Origin: Podarcis cretensis
Taxonomy: Eukaryota
NCBI GenBank assembly: GCA_951804945.1
Contig: OX638161.1
Coordinates: forward strand, 25,668,001 to 25,732,000
DNA length: 64,000 bases
Direction of reading: 5' to 3'
In this document: positions 22,196-50,227 of the stretch, one piece after another
Layout of the letters: every line of letters begins with the position of its first letter
Position numbering within the stretch: position 1 is the first letter of the stretch
Notes under the pieces: generated by a model
What the model saw: only the letters and a program-made list of their open reading frames with translations
The model's database searches: none
Told to the model about the DNA's origin: nothing
Position numbers and translations under genes: made by a program

Positions 22196-23457
22196 GTCAG
22201 AATATCGGATGTTTTTGCTTCTTATGCAGCTGGGCCAGCTCATCACAACCTTCCACTTTTCTTCTTGAGAATGCTTGTTTAAGTTGCAGTTTTGGGCAGC
22301 AGTGCCTCCCCTTAATTTCGAGAAACTTCTACAAGTTGTTTTCCATCATTCATGCAAACATATGAGCTAGCCACTCCATGGCTTACATTATGTGCAATTG
22401 CTAAGTGTTCATGTCTAGGTAAAATATTCCTCTGACACTTGTCAGAAGGGTGTATAAACCTTTGATCATGTAGAGCCCCCGAAAGATTCCTGGGGGCATG
22501 ATGGAAAAGGGCTTGGAAAGCAGAGCACCTATCCAGATTTCCAGTTGCTAGGATCAAAGTTTCAGTAATAAGGAAAACTGAATGCTAGGGTATTTCCAGC
22601 CTCATTTCTGCTAGCTAGACAAGCAAGAAAAGTATGGATGCACAGTGATCTGTCTCCCTCTTTTGAATAGCACAATGTTAGAACAGGTCAACAAGAGCTT
22701 TGCACAATCTGAGCCTTACCTAGGTGTCAGGCTGGGAGTCCCTGATGTGATTCAGACTTGCTGCTCATGCCCTTCAGATTTCTAGGCATCTGGACAGCCA
22801 GTTGGCTAGGATTTTTCTAGTCCTGTTAGTCATTTAGGAAGGGTAGTAGAGAAAGTGGCAGAAGTTAAAAAATCTGGATCAGCAACTATTTTTGACACAT
22901 CATTAAATGAATGTCACTAGCAAATCCAAACAAATGCTTTAGAAAAGTCTGTTCTTCCAGGTGGTGATATGATGGCACTGAACACGTTTAGATTTATGTT
23001 CCCAAGACTGTAGAGTTATTGACTCAATTAAGAGGCTTTTTGCAACCATGATATGTCATGTTCAACTTGGATAGTTGGAGCCCTGGTAAAGGCCTGAAAC
23101 CTGTGGTCCAGTAGTGCTACCCTCCCTCTAATTCAACACTCAGAGAAAAATGGATTTGTTAGGTAAACAAAATGGGATCTTGCTTTCCTTCTTTGAAAAA
23201 TGACAAGTTTTTTGCTGCCTCTGCTCTTGCTTTGTGGATGATAATGTGGGTGCTTGGGGAATATGATCAATAATGGGTCTAAGCTCCTTGTCTTCAAATG
23301 TTGAAAAACAGTTTGTAAGCTGTGGTCGGTTGGGGTGGTGCCTCCTGGACACACACACACACACGAGTTGTGCTTTGGGTTTTGCAGCTGCCATCTAAGT
23401 GTGGAATTTGGTATTGAATGTGACATTCAGCATCCTGAGAATCTTGGCTCGTGTATA

Positions 23458-23781
23458 CAGTGGTGCCCCGCAAGACGAATGCCTCGCAAGACGAAAAACT
23501 TGCTAGACGAAAGGGTTTTCCGTCTTTCGAGGTGCTTCGCAAGACGAATTTCCCTATGAGCTTGCTTTGCAAGATGAAAACGTCTTGCGAGTTCGTGCGA
23601 TTTTTTCCCTTTCCCCCCCCTTTTTCTAAGCCGCTAATAGCCGCTAAGCCGCTAATAGCCGCTAATAGCGCTAAGCCGCTAATAGCGCTAAGCCGCTAAT
23701 AGGGGTGCTTCGCAAGACGAGAAAACCGCAAGACGAAGAGACTCGTGGAACGAATTAATTTTGTCTTGCGAGGCACCACTG
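23458..23781. mobile_element. Tc1/mariner-type MITE with internal (AGCCGCTAAT)-like tandem array
   Basis: TIRs CAGTGGTGCCCCGCAAGACG ... GTCTTGCGAGGCACCACTG, TA TSD, repeated GCAAGACG subterminal motifs, short tandem array ~23628-23701. Confidence 0.88.
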
Positions 23782-25684
23782 TATATTAAACTGAGTGTCT
23801 GCCTGTTAAGGGTGCCAAGGTAGGATTGAAGGCAGTGTCTGGTGAAATCTCAGAATGTTGAGAGTAAATTGCACAGGATAAGCAAATATATAAGCAAAAA
23901 TTTGCTTTTTTCTCAGGAGCATCGATGGCCATAACTTAGCTTAATTACAAATGTGGCCTCTGGTAAAAATTAATTGCTGACCACGGTGATAGGGCCTTTC
24001 TAACGTTTCTGATATGATCCTTTGCTGTTAACCATCCACCTAGCACTAAGGCAGGGGGGCTGCATGGACAGCTTGTTCCGTCTGAGGTGCAATGCTCAAA
24101 TGGTTCTCAAGAAATACTTGAAGCAGCTGGAGCACTTAGAAATGTGACAGCTAGGATTAAGTGGATATATGCTCAACTTCCGCCTTTGAAATAAAAATGA
24201 AGTTCCGGACCCTTCGCAGTTGTGGAAAAACACTTGAACGTGTAGTGTTTGGGGAAGCATCCAATCTTGGTGCAACAAGTGCTGGTTAATTTTACTTTGG
24301 CTCGGCAACCTGCATCTATATGTGTAAATGTTGAGCTTTGTGTGTTGTTTGATGGCCAACTTAAGTATCATACCTGCTGAAGAGCAACCTTATATTGGAC
24401 TGCACAACACCAGCTACCTGACATTGAGTTTAGGTAAGTTACGTGATGATTTTGATTTTTGCCCTTTACCACAGCTGAGCTTTTTTTGCAGTGCCTTGTC
24501 TAGCAAATGTTTTTTCCAAGTTTTCCCACTTGGGCATTGCTGGAGTTGCAGTTCTTCCAAGTGCTTACTTGTACTAAATACATAGCGTAAATGTGAACAT
24601 TTACAGCAGGATCACATGATGGTGTGCTTCTTCATATAAAAGAACAATCCCTTCTAAGCAGCATGCCTGTTTTCTGCATACAGGATATTTTGTGTGGTGG
24701 AACATCCCATCACTGGAACTCCACCTGTGGTCTGAAGTGGTACATTCCAGACACAGGTTTGGCCACGTCTTCTGCTGCTTAAGAGAGCTAGGCCTTCACA
24801 ACTTTTCAGCTTCAAAATCTAAACAGGGTATAATGAATGGTAGTGCTTGCTGAATGGTGCAGTTGCCTCTACAAAGTCTCTTTTTAATGTTTTTAGGATT
24901 GGGGACCCATTTGAGCAACTGTTTAGACTAAGCAGGCCACGGTGAATAGTATGTACTGTGTAACTTTCCACTGAAATGTAGTTTCCTCAGAGTCATGAGT
25001 TGTTTCATGTTTGTTCTTTGAAAGAGCTTCACATAAATAGATGATGGTCCTGTCAGTGATTCAAATTTAGGGAGCGGAATTTAAGGTGGCACAACAGAGC
25101 TGTTGCTCAATCATCTTTTTTTCCAAACCACTGAGAAACTTGCTGCTGCAGTTCAACATTTGAAGACTTTGTAAAACTTTGGGGGAGTTTGTGAAATATT
25201 CATAACTTGACAGCAAGAAATGGTTTGCAAGGCCAAGTCTTTGATCTGTGGACCCTGAATTCAGTTGTGGGAGCTGCAGGAGGGAAGATGGGGCCCGACA
25301 ATTAACGAATGGGACCACAATGCCAGCGAAGCCATTTCTTGCCTATGAAAAAGGACTCAACGGTTTTGATTCTGCTAAAATGGTGATTCTTTTCTCGGTC
25401 TTCATATTTTTGCTTTGTGAAGAACAGTAAGAACTGGAGAAATATCTCTGGATCTATTAACCATAAGTGCCCCAGAGTAGACTGGAAGAAGACTGGAAAA
25501 GTAATGGTTAATGGCATGCAGTTTCCATCTCTTTCCTCTGGTTTCTTTCTTTTCTGTCATCATCTTCAACCCTTAGTTCTCATTCGCCATCTGTCATCTG
25601 TTCCTCCTTTTGGTGGTCCCTGCTGCAGTTGTTGCGGACTGTGAAAACTGTATCTGTGTTTACTCTTGTCATTCGCTCAAGGGC

Positions 25685-25685
<1 letters not shown>

Positions 25686-25718
<33 letters not shown>
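25686..25718. repeat. (GT)n microsatellite
   Basis: Perfect TG dinucleotide run. Confidence 0.9.
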
Positions 25719-25720
<2 letters not shown>

Positions 25721-28598
25721 TGTTTTGTATATCCATTGCAGAAAGACCTTGAGCTGCACACCCTGGACAACAGCTAAAGTATTTATAGAGTGCCTCTCAT
25801 ATTTTTTAAAAAATACCAAGGTGGTGTAAAAGTAATACGCAAGTACAATAAAACATAAAATGCCATAAAATGGATGCTCTTGTAGGAAAGCTTTCTGATT
25901 GTGCATTTCTTCTTCAAGTTGTGGGATGGTTGCTGCTTGTTGGTATAAGAGATGCTGATACAATTCAATCCTCTTTAGCAGGAACTATCACTGGGTCTGA
26001 GCTTGGCCCTCCCAAACAATAAACGAAAGCTAAGACGTCATCAAATTGATGGCGGAAGTGGCACAAGGTTTGAAGCAAGTCTCTACCTCCCCGCCCCTTG
26101 CTGACTTCCATTTTCCCTCCTTCGCATGGGGAGGCTCCCTGTAACATAATTTGAGGACTTGTACAATTGAAATAAACATTTTTGTACTTGCAAATGCAGT
26201 TCAAGATCTTTCGCTTTAAAAAAACCCCAGCCATTTCTGTTCTCCATGTACGTATGTTGGAGGAGCTGTGTTTTATAGAGTATGCTGGCATTTTATTTCC
26301 TGCTTTCTTTGTTGCATTCCTTGAACAGTCAGGCAGGGGACTTCAGCATTGTGGTAGGCACAACGAGGGGAGATTTAGGAGGAAGCAAAGAGGCCTTGAA
26401 AGCAAATTATCTTTTGTGAAACGGTATCATGAATAGGAGAGTTGAAAATGGAAGAATTAAGGCTAGTTCGCCTGATACTGTTTTTGCCAGGATATCATGT
26501 GAATCCTGCCTATGCATTTCTTACATGGGACTTACCTACACATCTGTTTTGCTACATGCAGAATGAAATAGATAGGGGAAGATATCACCCTAGTCTCTCA
26601 CTCTAGACTCTTAATGGGCAGAGCCAAGGTGGATAGTAATTCCTCAGGCTGCCCACAGCTGTGACCCATTCAGCTGTCCTCTCCACACCCAGTTCTAGGT
26701 ACAGCAAGTTTGTTGAGTTTCCCAGGAGGTCCAAAGGATGGGGAACAGGGGGTCCCTCCACTCACTGCTCTTTCTTCACTCTCTGTCCTCTCCTCCTTGA
26801 AGTATTGTAACTGTGGATTGGATGGGGAACCTGTGGACCTTCAGATGCTGTTGGACTCTCATCAGCCCAAGTCAGCATGGTCAGTGGGCATGGATGATGA
26901 GAGTTGTCATCCAATATCATCAGGAGAGGTCACAAGTTCAACATTCCTGCTATAGATTGGAGAAGGAATTGGAAGACCAGGGGAGCATATTTCAGCACAC
27001 TCCCACCTTATTACCCTGTTGCCGAAAGCTTGTGCTTTTTACAATTTCAGGGATATTTTAGGAGCCCCTTTGTGTTCTGAATAGCAAATCAGTCTGCCTG
27101 TGCTGCTGGACTGTGGTCTGTACTCATGGCCAGTTGCTTGGTCTGATATGTGTGTCTTCGGATTCTCATGCCCTTCATTTGCAGGAGCCCCTTGCATGCG
27201 TGTTGGAAGGTGATGTCTTATTTTAAAGCTGCATCTGCTTCTTTTCTCCCAGTGTTTTCTTTACCGTATGGGCTGTGTCAAGGTGGAAATGATTTTGACT
27301 GTTTTGTCATGTTAATGCTGCCTCTGAGGGTGTAGCATCAACATCCTTCCTGAGCTATATCATGAGCGCTTGCGCAAGTTAAGTTTCCATTCAGTCTTAG
27401 CCAGCAAGTTACAGGGGAAATGATTAAGTTGTGAATTCCAGCTAAAAAGATGAAGAGCTAAAAAGATGTTTTAGGGGAAACAATTTATAAAAGAAATTAA
27501 ATAATAAACAAATGTGTACAAATGTTCTAAGTCATGCATGCTTTGTTTGAAATAAAGCGTGCTGGGGGAAAAGGGTGTCAAAAGTCCCTTTTGTGGGGTT
27601 CACCCAAGGTGCAGAAGTAGCAAGTTATTTGCATTTGGGGGATATAAAATTATCTTGTTCCTCTTCAGATCTTTCTGCAAGGTCAATCTAGTCAAATAAA
27701 TCAGAGCTGTGTATGTTCTGTACAAGCACAGAACTTGGTATAAGACAAGATTATGCTGTACCTTTAGAACCTGGCTTCTTGATCATATTGAAATAAAAAG
27801 AAATAATAAAAGCCCTTTTCTAGCCATTATGGCAGAGTATTCTTGGAAGTGTGTGGGCGAACCCTGCTGAAATCTCGGAAGCCAGTGAGGATTGCTAATG
27901 AGATTTCTATTATTTGTAGCTGGGTCCTCCATGTTCTTTGCCACGTACAGCTAGCAAAAGCAGAATAAATTGGACAGAGCAATCACATTTCATAATAAAT
28001 CATTCATAATAGGATATTACGATGATTTGCCTAAGTTCTGATTCAGCTTGCAGAATTCTGGTTCAAATTTTTAGGCCCTGGTGTTGGGTATAAGCACCCT
28101 AAAATCCACATATTTCTTAAAGCGATCTTAAATCTTTTTTAGTATTTAAACTTTTGTATGTTTTAAAGTAGGGTTTAAATTTTTCTTGACTTTACTGTTT
28201 CATCTTTCATGCTTTGAGGTTTCTTTTTCCAATCAAGCAGTATATACATTTTATTAAATAAGTAAGTAAATAAAGCAAAGGTTTAGACCCCACTGGTCAT
28301 GAAACTAGGCAGGAAAAATACATAGGAAATGCCTGCTGAAATCACAGAAAATGGAATAGGGGCTGGGAGGCTTTCCAGGACTGAGCTTCAGTGCCCTCCA
28401 TAACTCTTGCTATTCCCCATTAGTAACAGAAGCAGAATAAATTACAGTATAAGTAGGTAGGCGCTTTAGTTTGCTTAATCATAACCCACTGACACTTAAC
28501 TTTGTTTAGTGTAGAACATGGTTTGCTTTATGGCAGAATTTTGATATTTTGTTATCTTCTCCCTAAGGTTCATAGTATACATAGCCCAGTGTATATAG

Positions 28599-28726
28599 CA
28601 GTGTTTCCCAAACTTGAGTCTCCAGTTGGACTACAATTCCCATCATCCCCAACCACTGGTCCAGCTAGGTAGGGTGATGGGAATTGTAGTCCAACAAGAG
28701 CTGGAGACCCAAGTTTGAGGAAGCTG
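28599..28726. mobile_element. Palindromic hAT MITE, related subfamily
   Basis: Shares the ACTACAATTCCCATCAT/GATGGGAATTGTAGT core with 11274 and 20570; near-TSD GTATATAG/GTATATAT. Confidence 0.8.
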
Positions 28727-29207
28727 GTATATATCATCCAGTTCTTGGCCAGACAACCTCTTGCCTTTCTTCCAACTTCTATGTACATGTTCGCTTCTCT
28801 CTATTGAGCCTGGAGCATCTTTGCTGAGGCTGATAGCATGCACTAGAGTACAGAGCAGCTGCATAGTTGCATGGTGGGATTTAAAGGGGGGAGGGGAGAC
28901 TCACTATTCAGAAGTCTGCAGAGGCTTGAATGGGAATGTTTCCCACCATATTTCTTTGGAGCTTAACTTGCAGTTTTTATGCCCAGCTTGGAAGGTCTGT
29001 GTTTCGCAAGCATCATGTCGCTCTCCCTCTGTTGGCTTTGTGGAGATGCCTTGCTCACCTTTTCTTCACATCCTCCTAGAGCCTTCTCTTCTTTCATTTT
29101 TTCCTCCTTTGGTATTTCTTTGCTTCTCTCCATCCATCTCCTGGTTCCTCATCCCCCTGCATGCCACTAACTAGTTTCATTAGATGTTAATTGATTTGTG
29201 AATTCAG

Positions 29208-29311
29208 GCTGAATTGCATCATCAGCAGATGGCGGATCCCGACCTGTTGGAGGAGTCTTCGTCTCTGCTGGAGCCGAGTGAACTGGGAAGAGGAACCCCA
29301 CTACGGTTAGG
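29208..29311 (+). CDS. ATP6V0A1: ATP6V0A1 coding exon 5 with alternative acceptors (29208 adds AELHHQQ; 29229 is the short form)
   Basis: (AELHHQQ)MADPDLLEESSSLLEPSELGRGTPLRL(G); acceptors TTCAG|GCT and CAGCAG|ATG; donor AGG|GTACGT. Confidence 0.95.
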
Positions 29312-30892
29312 GTACGTGCAACTTTCACTTTTCAGCAGTGTCGGTTGTGTTCTGTAGGATCTCTTCTGCGCATCAGTCATGATTGGTTAAGGCTGTAGGA
29401 CTTGGGTTTGCATTCTTCCATACTATTCTTGATTCCTTGGAGGAGAGCAAGCTATTTCTTGGTGTTCATATTATTTAGCTGAATCTGAATTAAGTTGCTC
29501 AGTATTAGATCTGATTGAACAGCATGCATCTCGTGCCAGATTGTTGACAGAAAAGCAGTTAACTGACAGCAGTTCCACTTTTATGTTTTTGGAAATGTAA
29601 AGAACCAAATAAATATTGGCCCCAGGCTGTGCAGATAATATAGAATTTCTGTAGCTTATCAGTTTTCACTCTTCACTCTATCTCCTTGTAGTGCTGCTTT
29701 GATATTTGGATAGCCTTGACAGCTGCTATGGATGCCTTTTATGTGCACCAACAATTGATAAACAGAGTTCTAGATTTACACAATAGTGGATTTTGTTCAG
29801 ATTCTGAAAGGCTGACATGGAAATAATGATTTTCAGTTAAAGATCTACTAAATTTGTCCTTCTCTTAGCATGCAAAATTCAGGCAAAATGACAATCCTAT
29901 GTGTTTTTCTGTCTGCATGAATTTTGCTCAGCTTCCATTCTCATGTTTGATTTCATGTAGTATTGTACTTGATACTCACTTGTTTTATTTTCTGTGGTGC
30001 ATCTTAGTTTTTTTATATAATTGCTTAATCATTGTTAAATGGACCATTTTAACAAATAGTGTCCTGCAGCAAATTCCCACCTCTTTGAGAATGTAACTTC
30101 TTTAGGTTTTATTTCCATATCATTTGCTAATTTTTGCCTCATCTCAGATTTTAATGCCAATCACGCTTTGAACTAACTATCTAGAACCCATAATGGTTTG
30201 AGGTTCCGAACATACAGCAGGTATACTATGTGGTGTGTAGAGTGCTTGGCTGCTTTTGTTTTTCCTTTGTCTCAACACTCAGTGCCATAAGATTATGCCT
30301 CTCTCCTTGGTGTAGCAGTCTTTGGGAGTAGACTGTAACCTATAGCTGGTCAATTCAGACACCACATCGCATATCATGATTCACAAATCCACCTCAAAGC
30401 ACGGTTCCCCATCCTGTTTTGCTGGTCAATTATGAAACAAGGGTTGCCAGTTTATATGTCATGCCAAACCATAGTTCTGCTTCCTTAGCCACAGTGTGTC
30501 ATGCCTTTCTATAGGCACAGCACAAAAGAGCAAAAGTGGCTTCATAATCATCATAATAATAATGCTCCCAACAGAATATTAAAAATAGAATCAAACATTA
30601 AAAACTTTCCTAAACAGGGCTGCCTTCAGATGTTTTCTAAAAGTCAGGTAGTTCTTAATGCTGGAAGAAACAGAGTTTGAATCCTACCTCCTTCTTTTTT
30701 TTTTACTAAAATTGCATAGACAGTGGCTTGTTTCCCTTTCACATTCACCAAACCGTTCATGTTGGGTCCCTCTCTTGCTTTCTGTTGCCTTTACAGTATC
30801 TGTCTGTGTGTCTTCCAGGCCCTGCACTGAACAGAACATTGCTGAATGCATACTAATTTCTTTTATTTTTGTGTGACTTCCATTGTGTTCAG

Positions 30893-31019
30893 ATTTGTGG
30901 CTGGTGTGATCAATCGTGAGCGGATCCCTACCTTTGAGCGGATGCTGTGGAGGGTGTGTCGTGGAAATGTCTTCTTGCGTCAGGCTGAAATTGAAAATCC
31001 GCTGGAGGACCCTGTGACG
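30893..31019 (+). CDS. ATP6V0A1: ATP6V0A1 coding exon 6
   Basis: [42 protein letters not shown]; 127 nt. Confidence 0.96.
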
Positions 31020-40205: not shown

Positions 40206-40686
40206 CAGATTCACTAGAGTCAAATGTGGCATGTTACTGCTGTGGAACGGAAATGCCCTTGAAGTTACTCACCCCTAAAGTGCAACTTGTGTAGTCTGAC
40301 ATCAGGGAATATTAGTGGGCAGTAAGATTGAGACCAAAGTTCACAGTGGGGACAGGCAGGCCTTCAATTATGTGGAGAACACAGGGGAGGGAGATCCAGC
40401 CAGATCCTTGGAGTATCCTTTACACTCAAAGCCTTTCACAGAAACTGTCTTAAAGTTTTTCCTGTAGCCATGAACACACGGTTAACATTTTTAAAAATAA
40501 AAGACACACCACGTCATGCTTGGTCTCAAGGATGCTTTATAAAGTAAAAGGAATGTTCCTACGGAGAGCAGATTATTTTGGATGTTACTGGGGATATTAT
40601 GGGTTTGGGTGTACTTAATTAGCTGTTTCACTGTTTGTCCTCTTCCTTGGTTCTAAACACCCTTGGGTCTTTGCACTTTGCACTAG

Positions 40687-40805
40687 ATCTGGAATATCGC
40701 CACCAACAAGCTGACCTTCCTCAACTCCTTCAAGATGAAGATGTCTGTCATTCTGGGCATCATCCACATGCTCTTTGGCGTCTCTCTCAGTCTGCTCAAT
40801 CACAT
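40687..40805 (+). CDS. ATP6V0A1: ATP6V0A1 coding exon 14
   Basis: [39 protein letters not shown](I); 119 nt. Confidence 0.96.
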
Positions 40806-41018
40806 GTGAGTGTGCTCATTTTAGTTTAGTAGTCAGTAGACAGGCTGAGAAGATGCAGGACCATAGAAAGCTGCCTTATACTGAGCCCAGACCTTTGGTG
40901 TGCCTTAGCACAGTACGGTCTGCACTGACTGGCAGCAGCTCTCCAGGGTTGGAGACATATCTCTTGTATCCGATGATTGAAGGCAGGGTCTTAAATTCCT
41001 TCTTTGCATATCCTCTAG

Positions 41019-41232
41019 CTACTTTAAGAAACCTTTGAACATCTACCTCGGGTTTATCCCTGAAATAGTCTTCATGACATCGCTGTTTGGCTATCTGGTC
41101 ATCCTCATTTTCTATAAGTGGACAGCCTACGATGCTAAGAACTCCATGGATGCACCAAGTCTTCTCATCCACTTCATCAACATGTTTCTCTTCTCCTATG
41201 ATCCCAAAGAAAAGATGCTTTATAAGGGACAG
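41019..41232 (+). CDS. ATP6V0A1: ATP6V0A1 coding exon 15
   Basis: [71 protein letters not shown]; 214 nt. Confidence 0.96.
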
Positions 41233-41739
41233 GTAGGTGGTTTGGTGAGGGCAAGAGCTGTTTTGCAGAAAGCAGCGCCTTCCTTGTTCTGGCTTTAAGT
41301 GTGTGTGTAGGGGAATCTACTGTTGAGCTGGGAGGGGCAAGAATCCTAGAATTGGAAAGGATCCTGAGGATCATCTAGTTTAACCCCCTTCAGTGCAGAA
41401 ATATGCAGCTGTCCCATATGGGGATCGAACCTGCAACCTTGGCATTTCAGCAAGAACTACTTTGCAAACCACATGAAAACATGCAGAAGCTCCCATTTGT
41501 TGTGAAGTTTGTGCAGGAGCACACACATCTGTATCTGCTAGCATTCATGCAATTATTTAGAATATGGGTTTTGATTTAAGAGCATGTTTCTAGACCCTAT
41601 GGCAACAGGGAAGGGTGGGCAAGTTCTCCTGAAAGAATCTGAAAGGGTTCTTCACTCAAACACAGGCAGGAGGGCTTAGGGAACTGGATGTGCTTGCCTG
41701 TTGGTGATAATCTCACTCCCTTATCTCTGTTCCCCACAG

Positions 41740-41847
41740 AAAGGGCTCCAGTGCTTCCTGGTTGTGGTAGCATTGCTGTGTGTGCCGTGGATGCTGGTTG
41801 CCAAACCTCTGGTCCTTCGCCAGCAGTACTTGCGAAGAAAGCACTTG
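41740..41847 (+). CDS. ATP6V0A1: ATP6V0A1 coding exon 16
   Basis: KGLQCFLVVVALLCVPWMLVAKPLVLRQQYLRRKHL; 108 nt; ends in phase 0. Confidence 0.96.
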
Positions 41848-42692
41848 GTGGGTGAATCTGTTTTTCCCTCTTTCCTTTGTTTTTTTTTTTATGTTCTTAT
41901 TTGTTCAGATACTAGAGGTTTAGTCTGGATTTCTGCGATGGAGATCTGCATCCAGATGAAGCTCTGTTAGCACTTCAGTCCTAAGCATACTTTCTTAGAA
42001 TGAAAACGTACTGGAATCATTTGCGACTTACTTTCAGGTTTAGGATTGCAGTTTAAATCCTGCTTGCAGGCAGAGGCACAGCTGTAATTTAGCAAACAGG
42101 CAGCATCTCTCATGACCACTGGTCGCTTTCTGGATCCATCTGAAATCCTGGTTCATATGCATGCATTTGCCACCCATGGCCGGGATCCACAGAGTTGCTT
42201 TAAGTGTGCCCCAACCCACTGGGATTTTTTTAAAAAACCTTTCTTTTGACCAGCCAGCCCCTATTTCACAAAAGAGGCTTTTGAATCTCCCATTTGGTTT
42301 CAGAAGAGATTTGCCCATGTAGAGTGAGACGTTGCTGCTCAAGCAGCCACTTGGGAGTGCGGAACTGGTGTGGTTCTGCTGGAGGAAAATAGCCTTCCAT
42401 CAGCAGAGACATTCAGAATGGTTTAGTCTTAAAACCCGTTGTGCAGCTGGTGACGTTAAGCTTTTAAGGACACCAACCTGCTGCTGTGATTCTCCAGAGA
42501 CGTGGCGGCTGTGGTGTTCTTGTGGCAAGCTGTTAAAGATGCAACAGCCCTTCAAATTGCAGCTCGGTTAAAGACGCTCCCTCTTCCTTCTCTGACCATC
42601 TCATCTCCCCATGACCCCTCCATTCGTCTCCCTTCTTTTCTCTTTGTTTTTCTCCTCCTTTTCCCCTTTTCTTTCCTTCCATTCGCTATCAG

Positions 42693-42767
42693 GAAGGGCA
42701 GCCCGTGGAACCCCCTGTCAGCCCAGCCCAGAGTCCGCAGGCAGTAGAGGCAGCGGCGGCTGCAACA
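42693..42767 (+). CDS. ATP6V0A1: Candidate in-frame cassette exon of ATP6V0A1 (EGQPVEPPVSPAQSPQAVEAAAAAT, 25 aa)
   Basis: ~117-nt AG-free polypyrimidine tract ending ATCAG|, donor ACA|GTGAGT, 75 nt, phase 0-0 matching the flanking exons, no stop codon. Confidence 0.75.
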
Positions 42768-45419
42768 GTGAGTGGATTAAAAGATGCCAAAAGGATGCAC
42801 ATGGCGAGAACGGGAGGTGCCCAGGGGCCTTGGAAAGTATCTGCCCCGAGGAGGAGGAATGGCACAGCGGCCCTTTCCTCGGAAAGATACGTTCCAAGAA
42901 ATCTCATCCTTTCCAAACCCTACACTCACGTGCTCAGGGGACACAACGCAACCGTATAATGTGGTTGGATTTCAAACTTTGGTGTGTATGCCAAGGGTCT
43001 CCTGCAGTTGTGCTTGGCAGAGGACACTAGGCAGTGCTCAGGGGTGTGCTGCCCTCATTTCCTTGGAGTGCTGTCCAGGTTTGTTAGGGCCAGCCGCCGT
43101 TCTTCATAAACTGAGTTGTATGTGCGCATGTCTTGGGATGCACCCAATTCTCCTCTGTGGATGCACACTGCATGGGAAATTGGCAAGGATGGACAACACT
43201 GCCTTATGGGCAGCTTCCTTGTCATTATAAATGTTAATTGTGGAACTCCTGCTAAGTGTCTAAGGAACTTCAGAGTTCCTGGGGCACACAGTTTGAAAAC
43301 CACGGTTGCAGCACAAAGAGATTCTTCGCCCTAGTGTGTGTATGTGGGGGAAGCCCCCTCTTTCCAGATGCCAAGGCCCTTGGCTTTTGCATAGCTGCCA
43401 CTTCTGTGGCTTTCCTCCCCTCCCTTTCTTCACAGTCCTCCCCAGGATTTTTGTCTCTTGAGTACGTTTTTAATTTGCATCCCATGTTTTCAGAGTGCCA
43501 TAATTGGTGGTGTCTCTCAGCAATGCCATCCCTTCTGAGTTCACGTCTCTGGCCTTCACCAGTTTCTTGCTGCCTGCTAGCTAATGGTCGCTTTGGGAAT
43601 CCTTGTGGCAGTGCACTGAGTTGCCGGCTGCCCACTTCAGTGCTGTTCTAAATTGCGCCCACAACTGTCTGTGCCGTTGTGATAGTTGTAGCCTACCTAC
43701 CGACGATTGCTGGAGAGCAAAACAGCTGTTTGCATTTCGGTATGCTGTTGCACTCCAGAAAGTCTTCTGCAGTCAGTTGAATGGCATGCCAGGTTTTTGG
43801 AACAAAGCACATGATTAGTGCTGTGAAATTGGGGTGTGGTATTTAGCAGTTAACCCGGCAAAAAAGTTGTGTGTTCTACAGTCTTGATGCGAGAACATGG
43901 AATTTGCTGCTCATGAAAAATCTGGTAACTTCAGAATTTCTTGCTTTCATGTGGGAAATGGTTTTAACCCTCAAGGCTACAAAGGCGGGTTGAAGAACAT
44001 AGGACCAGAAAGCCCATTAGCCCAGCATTCTTTCCAGATGCTTCTTGGAGCTGGCATGCTTGAACCTGAAGCTGATAACCTTCTCAACATCTGGTATTCA
44101 GAGGTATACTGCCTCTGAGTATGGGCGTCCCATTTGACTTTCAAGTAACTATCTGTGCAGTCGGAAGCCAATGGGATGGGAATATTGCTAGGGCAAGGGT
44201 TTGTAGTGGTCAGGTGCTCTGCAGCCTGCAGATTCCACAGTGTGTCCTGTTAGAAACAATATGGGTTTCCTTTTTGCCAATTTTTTAATAGAATATATCA
44301 AATCTACTTCTTAAAGCAAAGGGTGTACACACAGACAGATCTATGTTCTTTTTTTAAAAAAAATACTGATTAATCTACATTACAAAGAATCCCTTATGGA
44401 CTTATCAAAGTAAGTTGCCTCTAAGAACAATCTAGTTATTAATGTATTCCTTCCTAGCATCTGATGACGGCTGCAGACATTGGAGAGTCTCAAATGGCTG
44501 AATGTATGCCCCAGAAAGGAGTGACTTGGCCTGGCCAGGCCTCCCCATGTAAGGACAGGTCTGGTCTTCCCTGCTTGTGTTGTCGAAGAGCCAGACAGTC
44601 TCACCCATACCCAGCAGCAGAGTTCAGGAGGCTTTGCGTCCATTTCTTCACTTGCTAACAGATTATTTATTTCATAGGCCACTGATTGCATCTTTCTCTA
44701 GGGAATATTGTGAGAGTTCTTGCTGATGTTGCAAACATACAGCCTTTTTTTTTTTTTAAGCATTTGAGATTCTTGATTCCTGGCTCTCCTTCTCTCACTT
44801 CTCCTCTCTCCCCACCCCTCCAGCCCCTAACCCCTAGTTTCCCATTTTGAGAGGTCTGGTAAGCTCTCTACTTTAGACTAATGTTGTTGCGCCAGTTTTT
44901 GCTGCCTTTGGATTCGTAGTAGAAGAAGCTTAGGCTGTTCCGAAGAAGGAGGAGCCCTGGAAAACAGACGAAAGCATGCTTTAGTAGAAAAAACACTTTA
45001 ACAAATTGCTCAGTTCTTGATGCTCAAAAGTGCTGGGAAATAAGGCATGTGCTTATGATCAGGCAATGCAGTGTTTTGTGCTAGACTCGAGGTGGAAAAT
45101 CTAAATGGCAGTCTCTCAATCCCAAAACATTGTGATGCCTGAAGTGCTCTCATGCAAGTCTTGTTTAACTCAATGGGGCAGGCACATGAGAACTTCTCAG
45201 TGGGTTGTGCCCCATGGGTCAGATCTGTCTCCTGTGCCGCTACTGTTATTGGTACCCATAATATGTTGCCTGAGGCAAGTCTCTTGTCTCTCTTTCTCTC
45301 TTTCTCTCTCTCTCATATGGTAGGGCCAGTTCTGCTAATGGCCCTGCATGCCAATTCCATACTAAAACATGAACCGATTGTGTGTCTCCTCTTGTTTTCT
45401 CCTCTGTTGTCTGCTTTAG

Positions 45420-45527
45420 GGGACACTCAATTTTGGTGGGATCCGTGTGGGCAATGGCCCAACTGAAGAAGATGCAGAGATAATACAGCACGACCAGCTC
45501 TCAACCCATTCGGAGGAGGGGGAGGAG
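45420..45527 (+). CDS. ATP6V0A1: ATP6V0A1 coding exon 17
   Basis: GTLNFGGIRVGNGPTEEDAEIIQHDQLSTHSEEGEE; 108 nt. Confidence 0.96.
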
Positions 45528-46963
45528 GTAAGACCTCCCATTCTTTCTTTGTACAACAAACTTTCATTTGGGAGATGTTACAAGAAGGGGTGGACCTTTT
45601 ATGACTCTCCTTACATATATTACCAGGTCAGACCAGGCCTGTATCCATTTACCCTCTCTTGCAGCTGACATTTACTCAAACTAGCCAAAGCAGACTGCTT
45701 GGAAACTGTGTTGCCCCAATAACTGTTTTTCTTAAGACTAGGGAAGCTCAATTTGACACTTGGGAACACTTCCTGTAGTGTCTTTGTTCTGGCACTTGGA
45801 AAAACCTGTGGGCAGCCCCCTTCAAAAGGTGGTTGTAATAAGCTGAGGCTGTGTCTTAAGTTCTCAATAGTTTGTGGTGGACGGGGGTCCCTTTCAAGGC
45901 GGGTAGTAAAGACTTCAGGTCAGATTTGAGGGTCTGTTACAATCTCCTCGCTTCCCGATGGGAAACCTCTGAATGGGCTGCCTCACTGCTGCCCTTGTTT
46001 CAAAGAGAACTGAACAAGGGATCTTCCATTCAGTTTGCTTGTCTGCATGGGAGAAGGTCTTCCGATTTTTCCAGGCAGACCACTATGTCTCAGGGTGGTG
46101 GGAGGTGCATCTTAGCTGTGCAGGCTCTTGTTATCCGCTGTTTGAAGAGGGCATCCTTGTACGCTACCTTTGTGTACAAGGCAATCTTACTGAGATGGCT
46201 TAGACCCCTGAAACATTAATAAAAACTCAAGCATACAGGATCTCTGGTTATAGTTGGTGATGTGGCAGTTCAAAATGTAAGCCAGTTGAGCAGTGTAATG
46301 GGTCTTGTCCTGTCCTGAGGGCTGCTGTCCTAACAGAGGTTTTAGCCTTCATATAAAATGAGCATTCTCAGGGTTCCTTGCTGGAAAGCAGTTTTAAGTT
46401 CTGAGAACAGGCATTGCCATTGGTGCAAATGTATGAACCTGCCATATCTTGAATCAGACTGTCCCACCTAGCCTTAGTGCTGTCTACTTTTGATTGACAG
46501 TGTCTCTCCAGAGTGTTAGGAAGTCTTTCCTAGCTCTACTTCCTGAGATCCTTTGGAGAATCCCTTAGAGATGCCAGGGATTAAATGCGGGTCCTTAATG
46601 CATGCAGAGTATGTGCTCTTAACTTTGAGCTTTGACACACACACACACCCCTACAATGCACAATGTACACTACAAGCTTTCAGAGTTTTTCACAACTGGT
46701 ACACAAGAAGCACTGTAAAACTAGACTAATATCCCTCAAATTGTGATGATAGGGCTGAAACTGAGAGCTGATGGTTTGGCAAATCAGTCTTGGCCTTCTC
46801 TCCCTTGGGGAGAAGTCACAGTTGTTACCAATGCAAAATGAAGTGGAATGCAGCAACAGCAATGATAGAGCACAGTTGCATTTTAGGATATTGCACTGAA
46901 AGAGGATATGCTCTTGTGTTATCAAATGATTTACCAAACCAAATATTCCCTTGTGTTTTCAAG

Positions 46964-46981
46964 CCTGCCGTGGAGGAGGTG
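46964..46981 (+). CDS. ATP6V0A1: ATP6V0A1 18-nt alternative microexon (PAVEEV)
   Basis: TTTTCAAG|CCTGCCGTGGAGGAGGTG|GTAAGC; same position and size as the mammalian neuronal 6-aa insert (P[S/T]EDEV). Confidence 0.85.
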
Positions 46982-50077: not shown

Positions 50078-50195
50078 TTTGACTTTGGGGACACTGCTGT
50101 TCACCAGGCCATCCATACCATCGAATACTGCCTGGGCTGCATCTCCAACACAGCGTCATACCTTCGCCTCTGGGCGCTTAGCCTGGCGCATGCAC
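50078..50195 (+). CDS. ATP6V0A1: ATP6V0A1 coding exon 18, contains the essential Arg of [12 protein letters not shown] (codon 50165-50167)
   Basis: [39 protein letters not shown]; 118 nt. Confidence 0.97.
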
Positions 50196-50227
50196 GTGAG
50201 TAGCTTCACCATGGCTGGCTCTTTTGA

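Follow-up and report, generated by a model that had tools for sequence, protein, structure and literature searches.

Poea-Guyon and colleagues reportedly found in 2006 that two small splice inserts decide the neuronal expression and the sorting of the a1 subunit of the V-ATPase. The gene concerned, ATP6V0A1, encodes the neuronal V-ATPase a subunit and is essential for brain development, and its variants lead to epileptic encephalopathy (PMC8032687). One paper gives only the variants ATP6V0A1v1 to v4 (PMC2835735), and a 2021 study mentions three human RefSeq transcripts and cites Poea-Guyon et al. 2006, the source of the rat variants a1-I and a1-IV (PMC8032687). Here, we examined the ATP6V0A1 gene of the lizard Podarcis cretensis in a 64,000-nt stretch of contig OX638161.1 (the window, in whose positions all coordinates are given). 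The 75 nt at 42693-42767 on the + strand, between coding exons 16 and 17, are in our judgment likely to be a genuine alternative cassette exon of ATP6V0A1 that is older than the split between lizards and mammals.

The cassette represents a third site, distinct from both classical inserts, as the initial annotation of this DNA had maintained. The N insert (7 aa, AELHHQQ in the cat protein P0302 described below) comes from a 21-nt exon that is, like the cassette, small, optional, and frame-preserving and belongs to the same gene, but that contributes to the N-terminal cytosolic domain and is located tens of kilobases upstream. The C insert (6 aa) comes from a separate microexon of 18 nt at 46964-46981 on the + strand (PAVEEV in the lizard), which is also optional and frame-preserving and which extends the same loop leading to the helix with the essential Arg. 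It differs from the cassette in its location 4.2 kb downstream, after exon 17 rather than before it, in adding 6 residues instead of 25, and in having been described in the literature. Our literature search returned no paper on the 75-nt exon and none containing the cat peptide string, which agrees with the earlier remark that no functional description was known. The same annotation had allowed that the exon may appear in predicted amniote isoforms, and it does occur in one, the cat protein GAB5581085.1, named "isoform X1". The cassette is a new, uncharacterised addition to the known alternative exons of a1; biologically, it does not stand for a new class, and automated annotation already includes it in at least one mammal.

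The cassette exon and its splice signals

When the sequence was reread, the layout, coordinates, phase, acceptor, and donor first annotated for the exon proved exact. The 75 nt encode EGQPVEPPVSPAQSPQAVEAAAAAT without a stop, between the acceptor ctatcag/GAA and the donor ACA/gtgagt, and the phase is 0 at all three boundaries (end of exon 16, cassette, and start of exon 17). The GC content of the exon is 0.69 versus 0.47 for the intron. The intronic segment upstream of it (42553-42692, + strand) contains the branch-like CTGAC at 42592-42596 and the AG-free pyrimidine tract, both present as described, and ends in the ctatcag acceptor. The tract covers 42574-42690 (117 nt, 87% C/T, with four TCTT and five TTCT), and the preceding AG is found at 42572-42573. 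The AG-to-AG gap over the tract measures 119 nt; of the 2,717 such gaps in ATP6V0A1, it is the longest and has the highest pyrimidine content. The tract is an outlier within the gene.

A relaxed scan of the gene for acceptor/donor pairs returned the known exons together with ~20 decoy pairs, about 1/10 of which would be expected, by luck, to combine a length divisible by 3 with an open frame. The cassette was the sole nonannotated pair to combine the two. The sequence alone makes a case for a real exon that is only suggestive and partial, and the presence of one open symmetric decoy among ~20 pairs is not improbable. A chance pseudo-exon, namely, splicing noise at a strong cryptic acceptor without evolutionary history, would fit such a result as well as the low usage reported below. 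However, the same exon, with identical ends and identical length, is found in the cat and in a third species, and a tblastn comparison of the cat loop with the window aligned the cassette segment with an E value of 3e-7. These orthologues exclude a chance origin, to which we give hardly any credence. The decisive support for the exon comes from RNA and from other species, not from motifs.

The TGCATG motifs that had been pointed out on both sides of the exon are indeed present, at 42158-42163 (530 nt upstream of the cassette) and 43169-43174 (400 nt downstream). RBFOX-regulated exons are characterized by (U)GCAUG motifs that are enriched and located within ~300 nt. The two sites stand farther off than this, and the motif count over both strands of the window (74 observed versus 58.8 ± 8 expected from shuffled sequence) is near chance, so that the RBFOX control proposed along with the motifs is unsupported.

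Orthologues in a cat and in a third species

The open reading frame of the cassette was searched against proteins of 63 to 200 aa, and the only match was P0164, a Logan genomic or pre-mRNA open reading frame from a 973-nt contig of another species. It reads SIRYQ/EGQPVEAQGSTVPNQQALEAAAAAT/VSGFKN and hence contains 25 codons, of which the first six and the last seven specify residues identical to those of the lizard. Moreover, P0164 keeps the contexts of both splice sites, the acceptor as YQ (tatcag) and the donor as VSG (gtgagtgg). Its alignment to the window extends across frames from 42553 to 42785 (including LKTLPLPSLTI and SIRYQ), thus retaining ~140 nt of upstream intron. On the other side, it retains the donor region (42768-42785, + strand), consisting of gtgagt and the first intron bases with an in-frame VSG, and similarity fades soon past the donor.

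The second orthologue was retrieved with profile A4, built from the 232-aa fish a1 fragment P0036 and the lizard exons 16 to 19, entered as one row per exon and unjoined. The sequence retrieved, P0190, is a 190-aa open reading frame of a mammalian 2,239-nt JGI contig. It begins with VEAPVSPTPSQQGLEAAAAAT and continues directly with GTLNFGGIRVGNG, the end of the cassette peptide meeting the start of exon 17 (EAAAAAT/GTLNFGG). The C microexon (PTEDEV) and each subsequent exon up to the natural C-terminus follow. P0190 crosses several a1 junctions in spliced form and is therefore a spliced mRNA in which the cassette is joined to exon 17. The equivalent of the lizard donor is used in this mammalian transcript.

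The 90% cluster of P0190 includes P0302, which is GAB5581085.1, "V-type proton ATPase 116 kDa subunit a1 isoform X1" of Prionailurus iriomotensis (Iriomote cat). P0302 reads YLRRKHL/EGQPVEAPVSPTPSQQGLEAAAAAT and is 100% identical to P0190 over their overlap. As in the lizard, the exon of 25 residues follows right after RRKHL, and the cat and lizard peptides, with both ends in common, align at 42693-42767. Identity over the 25 residues amounts to 19/25 between lizard and cat, 19/25 between cat and P0164, and 16/25 between lizard and P0164; for the neighbouring exons of lizard and cat, it is 32/36 (exon 16) and 34/36 (exon 17). In this protein-level comparison, P0302, P0190, and P0164 each have 25 codons with identical ends, and the exon is conserved between lizard and cat. 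Unlike the lizard sequence, GAB5581085.1 is an automated model with oddities and without functional annotation. One of these oddities is an extra segment of 46 aa, GDSDAAG...KMKLR (residues 707 to 752), which follows the cassette and precedes exon 17 and which may be either a mammal-specific exon or a model artefact. This segment was treated as specific to the model because tblastn gave no match to it in the lizard window and P0190 lacks it. The comparisons did not include the partial human protein P0189 or a human-type Logan fragment, P0304, and a search of P0190 against metagenome contigs gave, among the matches listed, only distant eukaryotic a subunits and not the contig of P0190 itself.

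The alignment with P0164 also bears on another explanation, in which the conserved element would be an intronic RNA regulatory element (controlling, for example, the splicing of exon 17 or of a nearby microexon) that is occasionally spliced in by accident and yields a peptide without a role. The ~140 nt of upstream intron are as conserved as the ends of the exon, the middle of the exon varies, and inclusion is low, all of which would suit an element of this kind. Such an element would leave unexplained exactly 25 stop-free codons in three species, the 19 residues shared by lizard and cat, and an assembled mRNA-type contig with the inclusion form in one mammalian sample. Altogether, we regard this explanation as very improbable.

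Use of the cassette acceptor in lizard RNA

A search of sequencing runs with 42678-42782 gave 20 runs containing it under four organism labels, all near-identical, in addition to three raw RNA-seq runs. Runs X21 to X23 and X1 were mapped on window 41700-45560. X1 consists of RNA contigs from organism A, a close relative of the species of the window, and its RNA nature follows from a contig joining exon 16 to exon 17 at a depth of 130. As predicted by the initial annotation, the cassette acceptor is used in lizard RNA: one 387-nt contig of X1, with a depth of 5.69, joins 41847>42693, with GT..AG at the ends of the 845 nt skipped. Together with the donor used in the mammalian transcript, this supports a real, frame-preserving alternative exon. 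The join that skips the cassette, 41847>45420, has the depth of 130 in X1 and is represented in X23 by 14 reads with 11 starts. Cassette skipping is the dominant form.

The single contig that uses the acceptor does not stop at the cassette donor but continues through it to 43050. Moreover, the intron depth of X1, which is 0 to 2.5 upstream of the cassette, rises downstream of it to 2.2 to 5.7 in most bins as far as 44810, a pattern that fits molecules with the first intron removed and the second one kept, and an in-frame stop is reached at 42957-42959. These observations would agree with an unproductive path in lizards, in which exon 16 is spliced to 42693, the downstream 2.65-kb intron is retained, and the transcript is detained in the nucleus or degraded, full inclusion being negligible in this lineage. 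Nevertheless, the lack of a donor join in X1 is not evidence of absence because a short, low-depth branch leading into exon 17 at a depth of 130 is of the type that assemblers prune; contigs drop such rare branches, and the missing path is uninformative. The donor is the consensus gtgagt on its intron side and is conserved in P0164, its equivalent is used in mammalian P0190, and an unproductive path does not require that 75 nt stay open in both lizard and cat. We therefore consider this path improbable, and an alternative cassette exon predating the split of lizards and mammals remains our preferred reading.

Several results weigh against that preference. The join 42767>45420, the second one predicted from the sequence, was seen in no lizard run, the X1 contig reading past the donor instead. 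In X23, of which ~6% was read, inclusion joins were below the three-read listing threshold versus 14 reads for the join of exons 16 and 17; this run comes from a slightly different species, since most of its reads are 95 to 99% alike. Inclusion is low, with acceptor use at no more than ~4% of the main join in the one positive sample. None of the 110 teleost a1 proteins, among the matches listed in the search with the fish a1 protein P0017, which came from teleosts only, has an insert at RKHL/GT, so the cassette is not pan-vertebrate. As for the peptide, its middle 12 residues vary freely between species and its S-P sites are not all conserved, and AlphaFold2 applied to the cat model gave a mean predicted local distance difference test score (pLDDT) of 38, which is uninformative on disorder.

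Other features of the same runs were recorded. The two samples X1 and X23 differ in their splicing state at the C microexon (46964-46981), with X1 including it and X23 skipping it. In run X22, four to five reads fall immediately upstream of the cassette and into it (window 42345-42731), with none on exon 17; four of its six reads fit only partly, and the reads are too few to interpret. At the T-run 44746-44758 (window 44751-44757), the contig of organism A departs from the window by six consecutive T>A changes and by the loss of 1 nt, through either local rearrangement or an alignment artefact in low-complexity sequence.

The possibility that the cassette is an alternative last exon was also considered and is improbable, since the + strand lacks AATAAA from 40501 to 46218, and the sole ATTAAA (42776-42781) is read through in X1 and is not kept in P0164. 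This ATTAAA lies 9 nt past the cassette donor, the VSGFKN of P0164 implies a lack of conservation, and a function as a poly(A) signal is improbable.

Position, composition, and possible role of the insert in the a1 loop

The 25 residues are inserted directly after RRKHL, between residues 669 and 670 of the 838-aa mammalian a1 according to the alignment to a1 chains of the PDB, that is, at the start of the loop leading to the helix with the essential Arg. According to the literature, the a1 loop before this helix faces the cytosol. In the lizard, the insert is acidic (net charge of -3) and is made up only of E, G, Q, P, V, S, A, and T, without bulky hydrophobic or basic residues. Given this composition, the invariant ends (EGQPVE and EAAAAAT), and the variable middle, we infer a flexible extension of the loop rather than a folded element. 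The initial annotation had emphasized two S-P sites. One of them, S10-P11, is common to lizard and cat, and the second is not shared; P0164 has none. With only Ser10-Pro11 in common with the cat, a role of the insert as a kinase switch is possible but weakly founded.

We propose a model in which inclusion of the cassette would normally be repressed through its unusually long CU-rich tract. A PTBP-type repression is suggested by the record length of this tract and by the distant branch site, and PTBP-controlled exons are characterized by an extended upstream CU-rich tract such as the AG-free one found here, the extreme of its gene. The likeness to PTBP-repressed neuronal cassette exons would thus lie in the very long CU-rich tract, the distant branch site, the weak inclusion, and the co-occurrence with a microexon that we take to be neuron-type. 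The cassette departs from this class in that the classic CUCUCU motif is absent from the tract, which has only the TCTT and TTCT motifs; PTBP would be a candidate repressor. In a subset of neural cells, the repression may be relieved. Use in neural cells is suggested by the co-occurrence of the cassette with the C microexon, since this microexon is also present wherever the exon or its acceptor was seen in use (P0190 with the exon and X1 with the acceptor), which is only a hint of the tissue specificity that the initial annotation had proposed. The insert would then modulate the sorting of a1, its binding to partners, or its phosphorylation (through one conserved V-S-P site) but probably not proton transport itself.

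A bolder version can be formulated, which we put forward as speculative and rather unlikely in its entirety. The cassette would be an amniote-wide module, at least ~300 million years old, switched on only in particular types of neurons or sensory cells. It would place on the a1 loop, near the proton path, a flexible tail responsive to proline-directed kinases (V-S-P), and would give the V-ATPase of synaptic vesicles or lysosomes a distinct sorting or regulation, thus constituting a third functional splice switch of a1 that has been overlooked next to the N and C microexons.

A third a1 insert that at least lizards and cats have kept, located in the same loop a short way ahead of the essential-Arg helix, would be of interest as a candidate regulator of how the pump is targeted or coupled, as coding sequence that the interpretation of clinical variants and structural studies now ignore, and as a clean case of a low-inclusion exon maintained for hundreds of millions of years.

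The host gene is an orthologue of a1, as indicated by a match to Pfam PF01496 (V_ATPase_I), by the alignment of its exons to the fish a1 protein P0017, and by exon 17, which in the PDB matches only a1 chains. P0017 was the one full-length fish a1 that a query with exon 17 returned among protein representatives, besides mostly short genomic open reading frames. The coding region is complete in the window on the + strand (19655-58678), and its exons align to P0017 by tblastn except for the exon or exons encoding residues ~143 to 169 (the region of the N microexon), which were not located with the fish protein at 22199-30893. Exon 16 (41740-41847, + strand) encodes the end of a transmembrane helix followed by RQQYLRRKHL, as established by translation and by tblastn with P0017; it ends in CGA AGA AAG CAC TTG and matches positions 614 to 645 of PF01496. 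Its donor, gtgggt, starts at 41848 and is joined in RNA to 45420 in the main form or to 42693. Exon 17 (45420-45527, + strand) encodes GTLNFGGIRVGNGPTEEDAEIIQHDQLSTHSEEGEE, an a1-specific part of the loop, starts with GGG ACA CTC (GTLNFGG), and has the donor gtaaga; its PDB matches cover residues 670 to 705 or 677 to 712. Behind 45527, a loose end of an X1 contig maps without mismatch to the C microexon. The next constitutive exon (50078-50197, + strand), identified by tblastn with P0017 and by the loose end TTTGACTTTGGGGAC in X23, is where the helix bearing the essential Arg begins.

Teleosts, too, have optional segments in this loop. Like the cassette, the a1 loop inserts of Seriola X1 and Toxotes X4 (9 aa, HCLLSPALK) are lineage-specific, but they are positioned after exon 17 and not at RKHL/GT. 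The teleost a1 isoforms P0049, P0068, P0046, and P0156 display such an optional 9 aa after exon 17 (HCLLSPALK or RCLLSPAFK), and a further optional segment of 32 to 35 aa follows EDPTT in the N-terminal domain.

Four vertebrate genomic open reading frames (P0011, P0015, P0018, and P0026), some of them on NCBI contigs of up to 3.5 Mb, have 25 to 27 conserved codons directly upstream of exon 17, reading REAGPAENLETLEQTGTTSPTGLTQQ/GTQKFGG. The segment shows an in-frame 2-codon indel between species, and the sequence past the exon 17 donor is unrelated among the four. It looks like a 5'-extended exon 17, which would make this another lineage with an insert at the RKHL/GT site, and its resemblance to the amniote cassette (a start of the type E..P.E and a length of 25 aa) is weak.

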